Positions 19,829 through 54,170 are shown, counted from the stretch's first letter. The stretch: 64,000 nucleotides of DNA from Guillardia theta CCMP2712 (GCF_000315625.1 NW_005434531.1:12933-76932), one strand, 5' to 3'. The notes: generated by a model not told the origin, from the sequence alone. Numbers and translations: made by a program.

Positions 19829-20356
19829 GTCGCAGAAATGCTTGTAAGAAATTTTCCTGCTGTTTAAGGCATTTAGTGAGTGATGAATGCTCATATCATC
19901 TTCTCCTCTGCTTTAGACATCTTGAAGGACATCACAGCTAACTCGATATCACATATCATTTCGTTTGCTTGAATATCAGTGCTACAGCAAGCAACGCTGC
20001 ACCTTTCTGACCCTGCATTTCCTCATTCCTACCTTTCCTCTTTTCTCTCCATTCCTCTGCCCCCAACGCTATCCCTCCTCTCTCTAGCTCCTCCCTTCAT
20101 CTCTTCGCGCTCGCCGCAACCCCTGAAGCACATTCCTCAATGCCTCTAGACGCATACTCCTCTGTTGTCAACCGCCGATCAGTTCCGATCATCAGTGTAA
20201 ATATTACACTTTGAATTCACTTCTGTGATTTCAAATTTGAACCTCAATTTTTAACCTGGGCCGTTGTCATACCAACATCAGTCCCCGCACAACGGTTTGA
20301 CTGGCTGTAACCGTACGGTACTTGACAGCCGTTTCAAAACTGAACACTGACTCTGA

Positions 20357-20434
20357 ACTGATTTTTAACTTAACTTTGAGTAAAGACTCTGAGGGAGAAA
20401 AAGACTTTACTCAAAAGTTAAGTTAAAGAACAGT
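20357..20434. mobile_element. Miniature inverted-repeat element (29/30-bp arms, 19-bp spacer) sharing termini with the 49803-53594 element
   Basis: ACTGATTTTTAACTTAACTTTGAGTAAAG (20357-20385) and CTTTACTCAAAAGTTAAGTTAAAGAACAGT (20405-20434) are near reverse complements; 20357-20384 is identical to 49816-49843. Confidence 0.55.
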
Positions 20435-21312
20435 ACGAGAAAAAAAGACATCCGCCCCCAGTGTGCTCGGAGTGAATGATCAGGGCCGGACCCGGCCGGG
20501 CCCCGGAAGTCTCGGAAGTTTTAACTTGACACGCCGAACTCACAGGTGCCTCGAAGTTTTTGAACTTGTTCGAAAGTCCCTTCAGGTTCAATATGGGGTG
20601 GTTTGAGGGGAATACATGGGGGTGGGGGTGGTTCTGTTTCGAAATGGCGTGCGTGCGTGCGTGCGTGCAAGAGAGGAGAGGGAGGGAGGGAGGGAGGGAG
20701 GGAGGGAGGGAGGGGGGAGGGAGGGGACGGGAGGGGAGGGACGGAGGGACGGAGGGAGCGAGGGGAGGCGGAGGGGAGGCGGANNNNNNNNNNNNNNNNN
20801 NNNNNNNNNNNNNNNNNNNNNNNNNNNNNNNNNNNNNNNNNNNNNNNNNNNNNNNNNNNNNNNNNNNNNNNNNNNNNNNNNNNGGGATAGGAGAGGAGTA
20901 GTCGTCTTAAGCTCTTCCGAGAGATTCTACGTGGTATCAGATAGATAAGATTCAGTTTAGGCCAGCAGTCTTTGTCCTGAAGCAGAGTGTCTGCCGATGT
21001 CGCCTCGCTAGTATGAACGGCGGTCCCCCTATGCTTATGAGTGAGGTTCCGATGCCTAGAGGGAGCGAGGGAGCGGGGGAGGGAGGGAGGGAGGGAGCGA
21101 AGGTAGAACGAGATAGGAGAGGAGACAATCATGGAGCACGGAGAAAGAAAGAAGCAAGGCGATATCATATACTTCCGTCCATCCTTGCTCGTTGATTCCC
21201 ACCAATCCTTTGTCTTCCTCCAAGGATCTGACATGATCAGTCACAGATTTATGGATTGAAGAGCTCCGGGCTCTTTACAAGTGCTGATGCTGGGTACCAA
21301 CTGCTTGCTCGT

Positions 21313-48780: not shown

Positions 48781-50180
48781 TCTAAATGGATCCGACGGAG
48801 GATCATAACTCGAGATGAGAAATCCTTGTGATATTTGAGACAAAGAAGCCAAATTACATCTTCGCAGGAGCTCTGCAAAAGTTTTGTCAGGGAATCCTCA
48901 AGTTCATGGAGCAACACTGAACTAGAGAAAACTCCTTTACCTGTAGAATTCCAGAGTTTCTAGTTGACTTTGAGCCCTATATTGTTCATAAAAAGAGTCA
49001 GATCGATCAAAACTTGACTGTACATACTGTCATTATCATCAACCTCTCAAAGATAATTTTCAAGATGATGTTTGCCTCTCAATGCATGTCGTCCACAAAC
49101 TCTAAAATCCGTCGCTCCCAGCTCAAGAGCGCTATTCATGCAGAATCATCAATATCTTTCAAATGCAATATGTTGAAAATAATTCAATTCCGATATCCTA
49201 CACATATTTCAAACCTCTTACACACATACGGTCATCATCATCATCTTTCTTGTCCACCTTGCATTCCTAGAGCACCTTCGCTTCTCTTCACATAGACTTG
49301 AACGTCGCATATCTTCTTTTCGCTCTCTGAGGTGATCGCTTACACCATATCTTGTATTTCTCTCCTCTCCTCTCTCTCTGCTCTTGTTCCTTCTCTCACT
49401 TTCTCCCTCTCCATCTTTCATTCATCGACCTTATCCGGCGCATTCCACCCGACTGCTCGATCACCCACCCCATGTCCCCCCAATGATCACCCCCACACAG
49501 TCAGTTGATTGGGGGGTACTTTTTTCACTCAACCACGATGGGAACAACTCGTACCGCCGACCAACACTACCCAACCCCTAGCCATACCATGAAACCACCC
49601 CCTACGACTAGGTACCAATCAACTTCGCAGCAGCACCCCTATCGTTGACTACCCCCCTTTCTCTCTTTCCAGGACCCCCTGCATCCATATGAGGCAGGCA
49701 GGGAAGATTTGCCCCAAGACAGACCACCCTCTCAACGCTCAGACAAAAGTACCTACCCCCTTTTTATTAATCTCGGTTGACCACCCTACCCTATAAAATG
49801 ACGATTGTCCTTCCTACTGATTTTTAACTTAACTTTGAGTAAACATATTGACCTCCCCTACCTCCTGGCTCCCCGACGCAACTCGGAAGTACTACGGTAC
49901 CCTCGCTGGTCCCCTGTGCGATGATGAGGGAGCAGGTCGGCAAGGCTGACAAGGACCCGCTTGCTGAGGTCAAGATGCGCAGCCCGCAGAGAGAAGCAAG
50001 AGGGGGAGGGGCGAGGGCTATGGGCAGGGCTCTTGGCCTGATAGGCTTGAGCTCCATCATCATCTCGAGCGCGGTGGTGAGGAACGACCTGAGGGTTGGA
50101 GGGAAGGTTTTTCTGAGCTGTGCTTGTAACAGGGAGCGTCATTTCGATGTCCTGGGCGATATGTAGACTACAATCTGAGG

Positions 50181-52241
50181 ATGGCTGGGGGGGGAAGCTG
50201 CTTGCGCATACGAGGAGGGGATGCTAGGGAGGGAGGACGAGGTAATGTCTCGAGAGGAGTCAAGGAAAGAAACAAAGGGGCGAGCAAGAGGCAGCGGGTG
50301 TGCTACTCTGGAATGAATGTGAGCAAGCAGTCTGCCGAGACAGAGGTAAGAGGAGGGGTCAAGCCTGTAGAAGCAGATATCAAGGGGGTAGAAGCAAAGA
50401 TCGAGCGTGTGGAAGCAGATATCAAGGGGGTAGAAGTACAGATGAAGCTTGTGGACGAAGAAATCCAGGCTTTACTGCGTGAGATCAAATCTGAACAGGA
50501 TCCCACGATGAAGGCCGCCCTTGAGAGGAGACTCGAGCAGCTTGGAGCAGACAAGAAGCAGCTTGGAGCAGACAAGAAGCAGCTTGAAGCAGACAAGAAG
50601 CAGCTTGGAGCAGACAAGAAGCAGCTTGAAGCAGACAAGAAGCAGCTTGGAGCAGACAAGAAGCAGCTTGGAGAAGAAAAACTTATCCTTTTGAGACAGA
50701 GCACCGGATCCCATTTGCCACCGATTGCTTGGAAGGAGTCCGATGCAAGACTGGATCGGATGGGCTTTTGCAACGACAACAAGTACTTTCGTCTCGATGC
50801 ATCCTACCTACAAAGAGACGGAGAGCTCCTTCTCTACTGCCGGGAAGCTTTCAAGAATCAGCATCGTTTCTTGAGGGAGAAGGTGGTGGGGCAGCGAGCT
50901 TTTGGCTGGATCCAAGGCCCGCCGGGAACGGGGAAGACGACGACGACGCTAGCCTTCTGCTTGTCTCTTGACATGAGGGAATGGAGCGTAACGCTCATCA
51001 GGCTGCATTCAAACAAGAATACTCGGTGCATTCAAATCGTCGGCGGTAAGAGGAGATCGTGTGAAATATTACAGCCCTACTCATGGGAAGGGATCAACAG
51101 AATGCTGGAAGAATGGCAGGACTACAAGAAGGGTTTGGTGGTCCTGGACGGGTACTTGAGGCATGAGTCACATCACCGCCCCTTCCTTTGCACATGTAAC
51201 GAATGGCTGCTAGCTGATCGAGAGAATCGACGGGTTGTAGTAGCGACATCGATGTCTTCTCGAGGAAAGAGAAATGACTTTGAAGACTTTGAAGTGAATC
51301 TCCAAGAGCACACCGTTGTATCTTGGACGGAGAGAGAGTACCTGGAAGCAGTGGAGTGGGACGTTTTCTATCAGGGTGTAGCATGCATGCTGGAGGAGGA
51401 TGAAGGTGCGGCGAGCATTGGCTTGAAGACATGGAAGAGGAAAAGGTCTAAACGAGAGAAGATCAAGCTGAAATACTACCTGGCTGGCGGTTCATGTCGG
51501 TACATGTTCGAGACGCCCGCATCATTGGTGAAGCTGAGTCTGGATGCGGCTTTGAAATGCTGTCCAAACCTAGAAATCGTCTTCAGTGGCAACATTGGCG
51601 AATCATCACCGCAGGCTGTAAACCGCTTGATTGCGTGCTTCGAGTACAACGGGGAATCGAACTGGATGCCTGTGAGCAAGTATGTCGCGACGAAGCTTGC
51701 AGAAGCGGAAGAACTAGACACGCTGAAGAGGCTGTTCTCAAAGTATGGGGCACGCAATCCGACTACAAGGGGCCATCTTTTCGAGCTTTTCTTTTTCAAG
51801 AAGATCAAGGACGGGCTGAACTTCACGTATCGGGGATCACAAAAGGTCAGGCAATGGAACAAATGTCCAGTCATCACCTTTGATGCAAAGGGAGGCATGC
51901 GAACGCTTCCTGCAAAGAGAACTTGCTTGAAGCCCGTCAACCCCCTTCAAGGAGGCTACGACGCTATCATAGTAGAGCCTCGCAGGAAGTCAGTAGAGTT
52001 TGTGCAGGTGACAGAGGCAAAAGTCCACGCTTTCAAGCTGGCTTTCTTCGCAGAGGCTCTCACGGTGCTTGGCATCCCAGCAGCTGGATGGAAGGTGAAG
52101 GTGGTGTTCATGGTGCCGCGAGACAGGCTGGAGAACTTTCGGATAGGCAAAATCACGGGCTGCGGTGCGCTGGAGGAGTACGGATGGAAGGGAGGGGAGG
52201 AAGGGAGGCAGGCAAAGGTAGCGGGTATGGATGTCGCGTGA
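50181..52241 (+). CDS. Crinkler/RHS(CR)-type protein: coiled-coil header + P-loop NTPase + PD-(D/E)xK-fold nuclease, intronless
   Basis: LYCRE, WIQGPPGTGKT (Walker A), LVVLDG (Walker B), VVVATS, YYLAGGSCRYMF; C-terminal RGHLFE...GGYDAIIV...FVQVT...H is the typical CR restriction-endonuclease-fold pattern. Confidence 0.85.
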   Translation: MAGGGSCLRIRGGDAREGGRGNVSRGVKERNKGASKRQRVCYSGMNVSKQSAETEVRGGVKPVEADIKGVEAKIERVEADIKGVEVQMKLVDEEIQALLREIKSEQDPTMKAALERRLEQLGADKKQLGADKKQLEADKKQLGADKKQLEADKKQLGADKKQLGEEKLILLRQSTGSHLPPIAWKESDARLDRMGFCNDNKYFRLDASYLQRDGELLLYCREAFKNQHRFLREKVVGQRAFGWIQGPPGTGKTTTTLAFCLSLDMREWSVTLIRLHSNKNTRCIQIVGGKRRSCEILQPYSWEGINRMLEEWQDYKKGLVVLDGYLRHESHHRPFLCTCNEWLLADRENRRVVVATSMSSRGKRNDFEDFEVNLQEHTVVSWTEREYLEAVEWDVFYQGVACMLEEDEGAASIGLKTWKRKRSKREKIKLKYYLAGGSCRYMFETPASLVKLSLDAALKCCPNLEIVFSGNIGESSPQAVNRLIACFEYNGESNWMPVSKYVATKLAEAEELDTLKRLFSKYGARNPTTRGHLFELFFFKKIKDGLNFTYRGSQKVRQWNKCPVITFDAKGGMRTLPAKRTCLKPVNPLQGGYDAIIVEPRRKSVEFVQVTEAKVHAFKLAFFAEALTVLGIPAAGWKVKVVFMVPRDRLENFRIGKITGCGALEEYGWKGGEEGRQAKVAGMDVA
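50536..50672 (+). repeat. 21-bp coding tandem repeat (QL[G/E]ADKK), about 6.5 copies
   Basis: AGCAGCTTG(G/A)AGCAGACAAGA repeated with a single variable position. Confidence 0.95.
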
Positions 52242-54064
52242 GCTCACCGGCGTTCAGCAAGGATGAGCCGGGGAGGCGTGTGGCAGGCGAGGTAAAGATC
52301 CGACAAGAAGCGGCGGCTGGTCGTAAAGGGTCTGGGAAGATGATCAGGCTGATACTGCAGGATGAGATGGACATGTTGTGGAACAGACTGGCAGGGGAAG
52401 AGTGTAGAGGTTGAAAGACAACCTACTTGATCACTTTCATGTTGTACTTGATCAACGGTGTCATGATGGGAGGTACTGCTTGTGCTTACTTGATTTCGAA
52501 GTCTTTGCATCTCCATGTGCAACTTTCAAAGTCGTCACGATGCAATTTCCTCTGAGCTCCTTGTTGTAACGAGGTGAAGTAATGAAGAAAACAATTCTTG
52601 AAGCTTTCTGCTGTGTCAACAAAGGTTGCCTAGAACTACTTACCTGTCTCATTCTTCAGAAAAGGTGAGTACGTGTGTGTGTGGGCTCAGTCTCAAATGC
52701 TTGGGAGCAACCTGAACCAGCATTTACTCGGTTCCTTGCCCATACTTTTGAAGCAGATGTAACAACTTCAAAACCACTCCACCATCTTCAAAACCACTCC
52801 ATCACATTTGCATGCTCATGGTGTCTGGTGCCTCCTGACACACAGTTCCTTCAGAGGGCGTGAGCAACTGTAGGACGGGACCATCGACGACCACAACGTG
52901 CATCTCATCATCCAACACTGCAGCCATCTGTCTTCATCTGCCCCCCAACATCAGCTGCGGGACTGAAGAGTGCAGAGTCAAACCATGCAGCTTACAGGTT
53001 ACATGGGTCTCCTCGTTGCATCATTGGAGATCTTAGAGCGACTCATGACTCTCTGCTGCATCCCGTCGCCATCTCACTCCGCCATGGCTCAAGTCTAGCA
53101 ACAAGCAGCTCATGCCCATGCCATGATCTTGTCAGCGATGAAAGCCATCAACGATGACGCATGAGGGACGTGAAGAGTACAAGTATCACGCGCATCAGCT
53201 ACACGTTCTGATTATACTGATACGAGCTTCTTTATATTCGGTACTCGCTAGGGGTCCTCAGAGGGTAAGTTGAACCCAACTGATCGGACTCTCCGGCACT
53301 TAGTACACTGAGGCTGCCGCGGTGAGTTGGCGGCCTCCGGGCGCTCACCGGGCTGGCAGCCCGGCCGGCCGTGTTAACTTGCCAGTCAAAGTTGTGCGCC
53401 GCGCCCCCGCCGGCGCTGAGGACGGGCATCCGGTGGCCCGGGGCCCCGCCGGCACCATGTCGCTGTGCCCGCCGCCCGGCGAAGCCTCGGAATGACGGTG
53501 AGACGCGGCATACCGTACAGTACCGGAACGCACCCGGCCCGGGCCCGGCAATTGTTTACTCAAAGTTCAGTTAACAATCAGTAGGAGGACAATCAAGGGT
53601 GGAGGGTGGGGTACTTACTTATCACAATGACCGGTGATCAAGAGATGTGGCTGCACAACGTAGGGGTGCAACCACCCACTGCAAGGGTGGTCAAGGGGTG
53701 GGTAGTCCAGTGTTGTCTTGGGAGTGGTAGATCAAAACAGATGGGGTGGTAGGAGCATGGGTAGGTGAATGCTGAAGGGGGGTAGCGTTGGAGGGGTGGA
53801 GGGGGTGGGGGTTGGCGGCCACCGACATGCGCGGAGAGGGGAGGTGCTTGGAAAGGCGGAGGAAGAGGGAAGAGAAGGAGTAGAGGAGAGAATGCGTAGG
53901 AGAAGACAAGGGGCTAGAGGCGCTACAATGAGAAGAGAGCCAAACTCAATGCAGACGTGCTTTAGACGAGTGATGGTATTTAGGTTTCACTGGAGATGGG
54001 ACGGTGTTGGTGTGGGTCGGATCTCAGGTGTTAGGATGTGAGTTCTTGTGAAAGCACAAGTGGA

Positions 54065-54170
54065 AAGAGGGTGATACAGGCAGTTATTAAGACTCATTTT
54101 GCTGTCCCATGTAAAGGAAGAGGGTGATACAGGCAGTTATTAAGACTCATTCTGCTGTCCCATGTAAAGG
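54065..54170 (+). repeat. 53-bp tandem duplication
   Basis: 54065-54117 and 54118-54170 differ at one base. Confidence 0.95.

Follow-up and report, generated by a model that had tools for sequence, protein, structure and literature searches.

A multi-copy Crinkler-type gene between inverted copies of a dispersed repeat in Guillardia theta, and its probably coincidental likeness to a transposon

Does a Crinkler-type gene enclosed by inverted repeats make a transposon? The question is raised by positions 49803–53594 of a 64,000-nt stretch of Guillardia theta CCMP2712 DNA (GCF_000315625.1 NW_005434531.1:12933-76932; the whole stretch is hereafter called the window), where one long gene for a Crinkler/RHS-type (CR) protein has a copy of a short sequence on either side, one copy being inverted relative to the other. 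A first-pass annotation, made on this sequence, proposed that the copies may be terminal inverted repeats (TIRs) and the interval a candidate mobile element lacking a DDE transposase. Our analysis, in which L001–L013 serve as locus labels, leads to another reading, to which we would assign a probability of about one half: rather than forming a single TIR transposon, the interval would hold a promoter-less, multi-copy CR unit situated between two independent copies of a common promoter-region repeat.

The arms of the proposed element are the following.

49803–49850 (core 49812–49846), + strand: left copy of a dispersed repeat, with its GAGTAAA end towards the CR gene
53549–53594 (core 53552–53586), − strand: right copy of the dispersed repeat, with its TCGTACTG side towards the right-hand neighbour gene

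The inverted pair itself is genuine. When one arm is aligned with the inverse of the other, 44 of 48 columns are equal (91.7 %; blastn E 4e-11), and a 32-nt pattern drawn from the arms had no match in 100 shuffles. The locus accordingly has the first defining feature of a class II TIR transposon, namely the terminal inverted repeats; the other three of the four features that could be tested are lacking. No target-site duplication (TSD) is present at any register or plausible end of the two arms, as the first-pass annotation had itself remarked for the DNA outside the full repeats. No transposase, of the DDE or another known type, is encoded between the arms, where the CR gene is the only long open reading frame (ORF) and has no transposase-family match. 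Finally, no other copy with the same ends was found: homology among paralogues falls short of the left arm by 66 nt and of the right one by ~285 nt. The earlier suggestion that a TA at an internal position of each arm marks a Tc1/mariner-like end can be set aside as well, because the bases further out (TCG / GATTGTCC) are conserved among copies of the repeat family.

The segment that is shared between copies is another one. Its bounds, and the sequences that separate it from the arms, are listed here.

49916–53265, + strand: multi-copy CR gene unit, made up of the gene, a 3′ tail of ~1 kb and a junction 31-mer; common to the paralogues
49851–49915, no strand assigned: left spacer of 65 nt, unique, separating the left repeat from the unit
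52242–53220, + strand: non-coding 3′ tail of the unit, with 82–89 % identity to the tails at L002 and L003
53235–53265, no strand assigned: junction 31-mer, from the inter-unit junction of the arrays, in opposite orientation in the window
53266–53548, no strand assigned: GC-rich stretch of 283 nt before the right repeat, unique, with no homologue in the window or in L001–L007

For comparison, 11 G. theta loci with CR paralogues were used, all of them chosen via CR proteins. The close paralogues at L001, L002 and L003 share 85–94 % DNA identity with the window (blastn), and this covers only 49916 to ~53220 and the 31-mer. The unit reaches from 5 nt ahead of the start codon to ~1 kb past the stop; both of its ends fall inside the proposed TIRs, and it brings no upstream sequence of its own. 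At L002 at least five units stand head to tail, in both orientations, and the array at L004 consists of three units of a second CR subfamily; a scan for the repeat motif found no copy in either array. The view of the arms as the ends of a mobile element is thus not supported: paralogue homology lies wholly within them, the arrays do without the repeat and a TSD is missing. The tail also contains a 20-nt minisatellite, with two copies at 52763–52802 and ~16 at L003 11697–12018. A 3.5-kb contig from an ENA metagenome (ERZ930064; L007) is 93–97 % identical to the second-subfamily unit of L004, non-coding parts included, and the sample therefore contains DNA of G. theta or of a near relative.

In our preferred reading, 49916–53265 would be one solitary representative of a gene unit of 3.3 kb, present in G. 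theta both in tandem arrays and at dispersed loci, and its spread would take place at the DNA level, the intron being kept and poly-A being absent. A processed retrocopy was considered and rejected: retroposition is excluded because the 56-nt intron is retained and no A-run is found at 53200–53270. More can be said about the 3′ end of the unit. The 31-mer aligns with the array junction with a local score of 57, as against 16 ± 2 for shuffles, and does so in reverse orientation only. An inverted junction fragment at the end of a solo unit suggests a template switch or an inversion during copying, and would point to recombination or repair copying as the way in which the unit moved. The left spacer was also considered as a diverged array junction; this was rejected, its similarity to the junction not being significant, nor that to the other side of the unit.

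The organization of the gene is consistent with copying from DNA, and it differs in one respect from what had been annotated.

49921–50076, + strand: probable exon 1, 52 codons including a hydrophobic stretch; paralogue genes start at the equivalent position
50077–50132, + strand: probable intron, 56 nt, GT..AG, common to the annotated model of paralogue P0002
50133–52241, + strand: probable exon 2 including the stop codon; contains the ORF at 50181–52241 and matches P0002 residues 52–697
50536–50682, + strand: 21-nt tandem repeat in seven copies, encoding coiled-coil heptads

The ORF at 50181–52241 is indeed open over 686 aa, and its closest protein matches are G. theta CCMP2712 paralogues with 76–85 % identity. 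The gene, however, is probably not the intronless one that the first-pass annotation described: with the annotated two-exon model of P0002 it has in common its start, at 49921, and an intron of 56 nt, as judged by comparing exons 1 and 2 with P0002 separately rather than as a joined model. Exon 1 (49921–50076) matches residues 1–51 of P0002, with 89 % identity over residues 1–37, and the gene span of P0002 exceeds its coding length by 56 nt. The 21-nt repeat varies in copy number among paralogues, being far less repeated in P0001 and P0002, so that the length of the coiled coil differs from copy to copy.

The state of the copies gives some indication of how the family is maintained. Those in the window and at L001 are full-length and open (L001 additionally carries extra upstream fragments), and three units of L002 have long open frames of 630–644 codons; L003 has two truncated copies, and the copy at L010 has one frame interruption. 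Between open copies the ratio of nonsynonymous to synonymous substitution rates is about 1 (0.6–1.7). Nevertheless, when random substitution at 3–5 % was simulated, only 0.3–5 % of copies remained open, which argues that the frames are being kept. The pattern fits a family that is kept intact while diversifying fast, as conflict-type genes are.

Two modules can be recognized in the protein downstream of the coiled coil.

50823–51590, + strand: P-loop ATPase module of AAA+ type, Walker A starting at 50913; recognized by Pfam, PDB profile search and the AlphaFold (AF2) model with Foldseek
51603–52238, + strand: C-terminal domain of 212 aa, with an alpha/beta core and conserved E, D and Q-x-T / H-x-x-K positions

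The Crinkler/RHS-type assignment made at first pass, a nucleoside triphosphatase (NTPase) joined to a C-terminal module, is well founded. Oomycete Crinkler (CRN) proteins, at least ten of them, match residues 200–686 over nearly the whole stretch (E 1e-40 to 1e-60; 93–100 % of these residues covered at 28–34 % identity); they come from Phytophthora, Pythium, Aphanomyces and Thraustotheca, and many of them possess the PF20147 header. Pfam gave weak P-loop matches only, sequence searches of the PDB gave P-loop matches only, and a PDB profile search brought up RFC, ORC1 and Cdc6. The AF2 model of residues 176–686 has a pLDDT of 86 and a pTM of 0.82, and its ATPase half is matched by Foldseek to PCH2/TRIP13, RFC, ORC1/Cdc6 and RuvB, with E-values from 3e-6. 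The first half of this region is thus clearly predicted to adopt an AAA+ ATPase fold. For the C-terminal half, the restriction endonuclease (REase) named in the first-pass annotation is suggestive only. Modelled alone, the 212 residues reach a pLDDT of 87.8, and nearly all their best Foldseek neighbours are PD-(D/E)xK nucleases (NucS, Bax1, OkrAI, MspJI, BspD6I, Hjc, Can2, SduA and BamHI), the best of these matches having an E-value of 0.046. The domain has no match in Pfam, PADLOC or NCBIfam, and PADLOC and NCBIfam otherwise returned coiled-coil and P-loop noise only. Conservation of the domain reaches the oomycete CRN proteins. On the model, it probably has the PD-(D/E)xK fold.

The N-terminus is of a different kind. 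No match to the ubiquitin-like Crinkler header (PF20147 / LxLFLAK) was found there with Pfam; the protein of the window begins with a short hydrophobic stretch followed by the heptad coiled coil, and among the G. theta paralogues the N-termini that precede the coiled coil are not conserved. Judging from its family, the protein would most likely be an ATP-regulated DNA-cutting toxin or conflict protein. A search of viral contigs with the protein alignment found no relatives.

If the unit ends inside the arms, what are the arms? They belong to a dispersed repeat family. The natural 35-mer at window 49812–49846 was used to scan 296 kb of G. theta DNA, at a threshold of at least 22–23 matches in 35 that gave no matches in shuffles. 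Fourteen copies were found, about one per 20 kb, in intergenic DNA that is mostly 5′ of genes; the majority of places have no CR gene. Four are in the window, including both arms and the palindrome given below, and ten further copies lie in 232 kb of other loci (L001, L003, L005 with two and a fragment, L006 with two and fragments, L009, L010 with two, and L013). Exact matches of 28–31 nt recur in G. theta scaffolds. Rfam had no match in the whole window, and the exact 21-nt core, looked for in metagenomes, gave a single chance match, to AT-rich DNA that is unrelated (L008).

20353–20438, no strand assigned: palindrome of two repeat copies, GAGTAAA ends facing each other 16–19 nt apart; no CR gene within 29 kb

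The palindrome is followed by GC-rich DNA with G-rich boxes, and the same palindromic layout is seen at L005 16549–16608. Just downstream of the pair, at 20640–20700, are microsatellites of TGCG repeats and then of GGGA/GGGAG repeats. Taken over all loci, the layouts comprise direct pairs, inverted and tandem copies, palindromes with a 16–19-nt spacer, units of ~200–250 bp with inverted ends (L005 16362–16566, L006 9185–9428), and truncated or nested fragments (L003, L004 1621–1640, L006 9276–9292). Similarity among copies mostly stops sharply after GAGTAAA, the end that faces the gene in the window, and in some pairs continues for up to ~75 nt on the side away from the CR gene (L005/L010, z 11–19). 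This is the opposite of what would be expected from the outer termini of a CR-carrying element. Homology of the GC-rich DNA beside the copies was considered and rejected; the motif alone is common to them.

Of 11 copies, 10 turn their TCGTACTG side to the 5′ end of the closest called gene (p 0.006), and what the first-pass annotation had offered merely as an alternative, an oriented upstream element of the neighbouring genes, fits better than its main proposal. GTAC tetramers, often in the form of CCGTAC / GTACGG boxes, are enriched ~3-fold in the 120 nt that adjoin the 14 copies on either side (7–8 versus 2.7 per kb; p 0.006 and 0.0006), which may reflect a shared cis-regulatory context. The repeat is part of a promoter-region module, whether derived from a MITE (a miniature transposable element with inverted repeats) or otherwise. 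Like MITE-like promoter-region repeats, it is short, multi-copy and intergenic, has an AT-rich core and forms some inverted-end units of 90–250 bp; unlike them, it has no demonstrable TSD, and its copies have interiors without homology to one another. The repeat is multi-copy and includes units with inverted ends; a TSD consistent from copy to copy was not found. In the window, the left copy lies 71–118 nt upstream of the CR start codon at 49921 and is directly preceded by a TATA-like box at 49792–49799. In our preferred reading, the left repeat and this box would probably provide the promoter-side function for a CR gene whose unit has no upstream sequence of its own, while the right repeat would form part of the DNA upstream of the neighbour on the right and probably serve that gene.

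The neighbours are as first described: a GNT-I/GT13 gene to the left on the − strand, and glycine-rich ORFs to the right on the + strand. Base composition is mirrored outside the arms, being C-rich (CCACCC-type) at 49350–49800 on the left and G-rich (GGGTGG-type) at 53595–53900 on the right; read on its own sense strand, each neighbour gene thus has G-rich DNA upstream. The right-hand neighbour region also contains, at 54065–54170, a tandem duplication of 53 nt with 98 % identity.

Taken to its limit, the regulatory character of the repeat would make mobility superfluous: the repeat could be a GTAC-rich cis-regulatory module of a shared regulon that includes CR genes, and never have been mobile. 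The location of copies in 5′ intergenic regions, with their orientation to gene starts in 10 of 11 cases, the 3-fold excess of GTAC on both sides, and the TATA-like box that adjoins both copies standing directly upstream of intact CR genes would all follow. Yet 35 nt, conserved at ~90 % between loci that are unrelated, make a long core for a binding site, one more like that of a recently spread repeat, and a module of this type would not be expected to leave the truncated and nested fragments (L003, L004 1621–1640, L006 9276–9292) or the tandem and palindromic clusters. We regard this explanation as unlikely, though not negligible.

The opposite extreme would retain a transposon. The interval 49803–53594 could be a non-autonomous TIR element, or a composite built from two copies of the repeat, that captured a CR unit, its transposase being encoded elsewhere and the short palindromes being miniature derivatives. 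The miniature palindrome at 20353–20438 and the ~200–250-bp inverted-end units (L005 16362–16566, L006 9185–9428) would find a natural place here, the 44/48 agreement of the arms extends past the family core on both sides, the repeat is associated with CR 5′ ends, and there is a precedent in teleosts, where Crinkler-like genes are flanked by the TIRs of non-autonomous hAT/mariner elements (PMC12957317). Such an element should nevertheless have left a TSD at the arms of the window and a second copy with the same ends, and neither was found; L001–L003 lack the right arm and have no spacer in common. Homology among copies, extending away from the gene and mostly stopping sharply at the gene-facing end, runs the wrong way for an outer terminus. 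A captured CR unit thus seems a rather doubtful explanation, although among the alternatives it deserves to be taken seriously.

A further argument against it comes from the surroundings of the other CR genes, where the window was left out of the counts because it had been chosen for the pair. The first-pass annotation had proposed looking for inward-facing pairs enriched around paralogues. Within the 296 kb, such a pair within 3 kb is found at only one of 12 other CR blocks (L010), a result whose chance probability is 0.05 at uniform density and 0.32 if copies are 3-fold concentrated in intergenic DNA. The L010 pair was considered as a second element and rejected, as it also encloses an ordinary armadillo-repeat host gene. 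The latter is a 444-aa ORF (L010 8330–9664, − strand) that is absent from the record's gene calls and is arranged head to head with the CR paralogue.

Single copies upstream of CR genes behave differently from pairs. At L013 a repeat in the same orientation stands 40 nt upstream of the CR start, preceded by the same TATA-like box as in the window, and at L003 one stands ~57 nt upstream of a truncated CR copy. Because inward pairs are rare and upstream copies enriched, the right arm looks incidental and the position of the left arm non-random. Near CR genes the repeat may act as promoter module, as insertion target or as what remains of an end. At the same time, the repeat is ~90 % conserved beside CR proteins that are only 42–48 % identical, and is equally conserved where there is no CR gene; since its conservation is independent of CR divergence, repeat and gene have separate histories.

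Several points weigh against our preferred reading and should be considered together. A same-orientation repeat is present at ≤100 nt upstream in 2 of the 12 other CR blocks and at 0 of ~55 other called genes (Fisher p 0.03), and chance does not easily explain this position. The likeness between the two arms of the window exceeds the family core, with 9 nt more at one end and 6–7 nt more at the other, as sister arms of one element would show. The promoter function given to the left repeat is one that we infer, and the Foldseek matches of the C-terminal domain lie below significance. The sample moreover amounts to 296 kb of ~87 Mb and is biased, the loci having been chosen for CR genes, so that the background estimates are rough.

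The non-random position upstream of CR genes could also mean that the repeat is a target. CR units would then be preferentially copied into or beside its GAGTAAA end, for instance at the centre of palindromic pairs, and the repeats flanking a unit would be the halves of an older target. Palindromic pairs with a 16–19-nt spacer do exist without CR genes, CR genes start 40–75 nt past the same repeat end (window and L013, with the truncated case of L003; Fisher p 0.03), the unit has no upstream sequence of its own, and three of the nucleases to which the C-terminal domain shows weak fold similarity (Hjc, NucS and Bax1) are junction-resolving or structure-specific. However, most CR blocks (L002, L005, two blocks of L011, and L012) have no repeat within reach, distances and spacer sequences vary among loci, recognition of the repeat by the CR protein is an assumption, and the fold matches are not significant. 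Targeted copying is, in our view, improbable. More broadly, it is tempting to speculate that copying of the CR unit is tied to the repeat in some way, as attachment site or as ends, and that a protein combining AAA+ and REase-fold modules aids its own spread. This is a long shot; if it were true, the locus would represent a eukaryotic selfish element using a nuclease–ATPase pair instead of a DDE transposase.

The strongest version of that idea, and the first of the two put forward at first pass, is an autonomous element in which the NTPase-REase protein itself mobilizes the interval by acting on both inverted repeats. The CR gene is the sole gene between the arms, the family is multi-copy, and NTPase+REase modules have been linked to prokaryotic transposable elements (Zhang et al. 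2016, via PMC5289972). All that speaks against a captured unit applies here too, from the missing TSD to the single inward pair with its host gene. In addition, array units with intact long ORFs carry no repeats, the repeat keeps its ~90 % conservation whether the adjacent CR proteins have diverged or are absent altogether, and no relatives of the CR protein were found on viral contigs. With arrays that lack the repeat, and no common history of repeat and gene, a mobilizing role of the protein seems very improbable.

How does the family compare with known systems? CR proteins with a P-loop NTPase and a C-terminal REase module have been described (Zhang et al. 2016, summarised in PMC5289972), and the CRN genes of P. 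infestans are reported to form tail-to-head arrays, which were linked to helitrons (PMC5289972). The G. theta proteins resemble oomycete CRN effectors in their nearly end-to-end homology over residues 200–686 and in forming multi-copy families with tail-to-head arrays. They differ in having a non-conserved hydrophobic N-terminus and coiled coil in place of the PF20147 / LxLFLAK header, and G. theta being a free-living alga, no role as an injected effector is implied. No Rep/helicase ORF of the helitron type was seen in the loci read, the ends of which were not systematically inspected. Another parallel is AACRNL, a teleost Crinkler-like "selfish" gene between the TIRs of non-autonomous hAT/mariner elements (PMC12957317). 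It too is header-degenerate, Crinkler-like and multi-copy in a free-living eukaryote, with small-family inverted repeats on both sides; its toxin domain, however, belongs to the ADP-ribosyltransferases, and the TIRs beside it can be matched to transposon families already known (PMC12957317). The G. theta locus, in contrast, combines an ATPase with a probable nuclease, and its repeat, which matches no known family and has no TSD, does not mark the limits of the duplicated unit.

Within the known Crinkler/RHS-type NTPase-REase class, the protein is a new member that lacks the header. That Crinkler NTPase-nuclease modules descend from mobile elements is an idea known as "transposons to toxins", behind which stands the pairing of TnsA (REase fold) with TnsC (AAA+) in Tn7-type transposons. 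The G. theta protein likewise combines an AAA+ ATPase with a probable REase-fold domain, a likeness that is a lead only; TnsA and TnsC were not among the named matches in PDB sequence or fold searches, and in contrast to Tn7-type systems the locus has neither a DDE partner nor defined element ends. We know of no eukaryotic Crinkler copy with element ends. The present locus does not fill this gap, because what look like its ends are copies of a common promoter-region repeat that is unrelated to it: its likeness to a TIR transposon is probably coincidental, and a modest link persists in the position of the repeat upstream of CR genes. The repeat family and this position appear to be undescribed in the literature, in which no paper naming Guillardia together with Crinkler was found. 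What the locus does document is a header-less, multi-copy and fast-diversifying Crinkler-type family in a free-living cryptophyte, together with a dispersed promoter-region repeat in G. theta that has a statistically modest, specific habit of lying upstream of CR genes.

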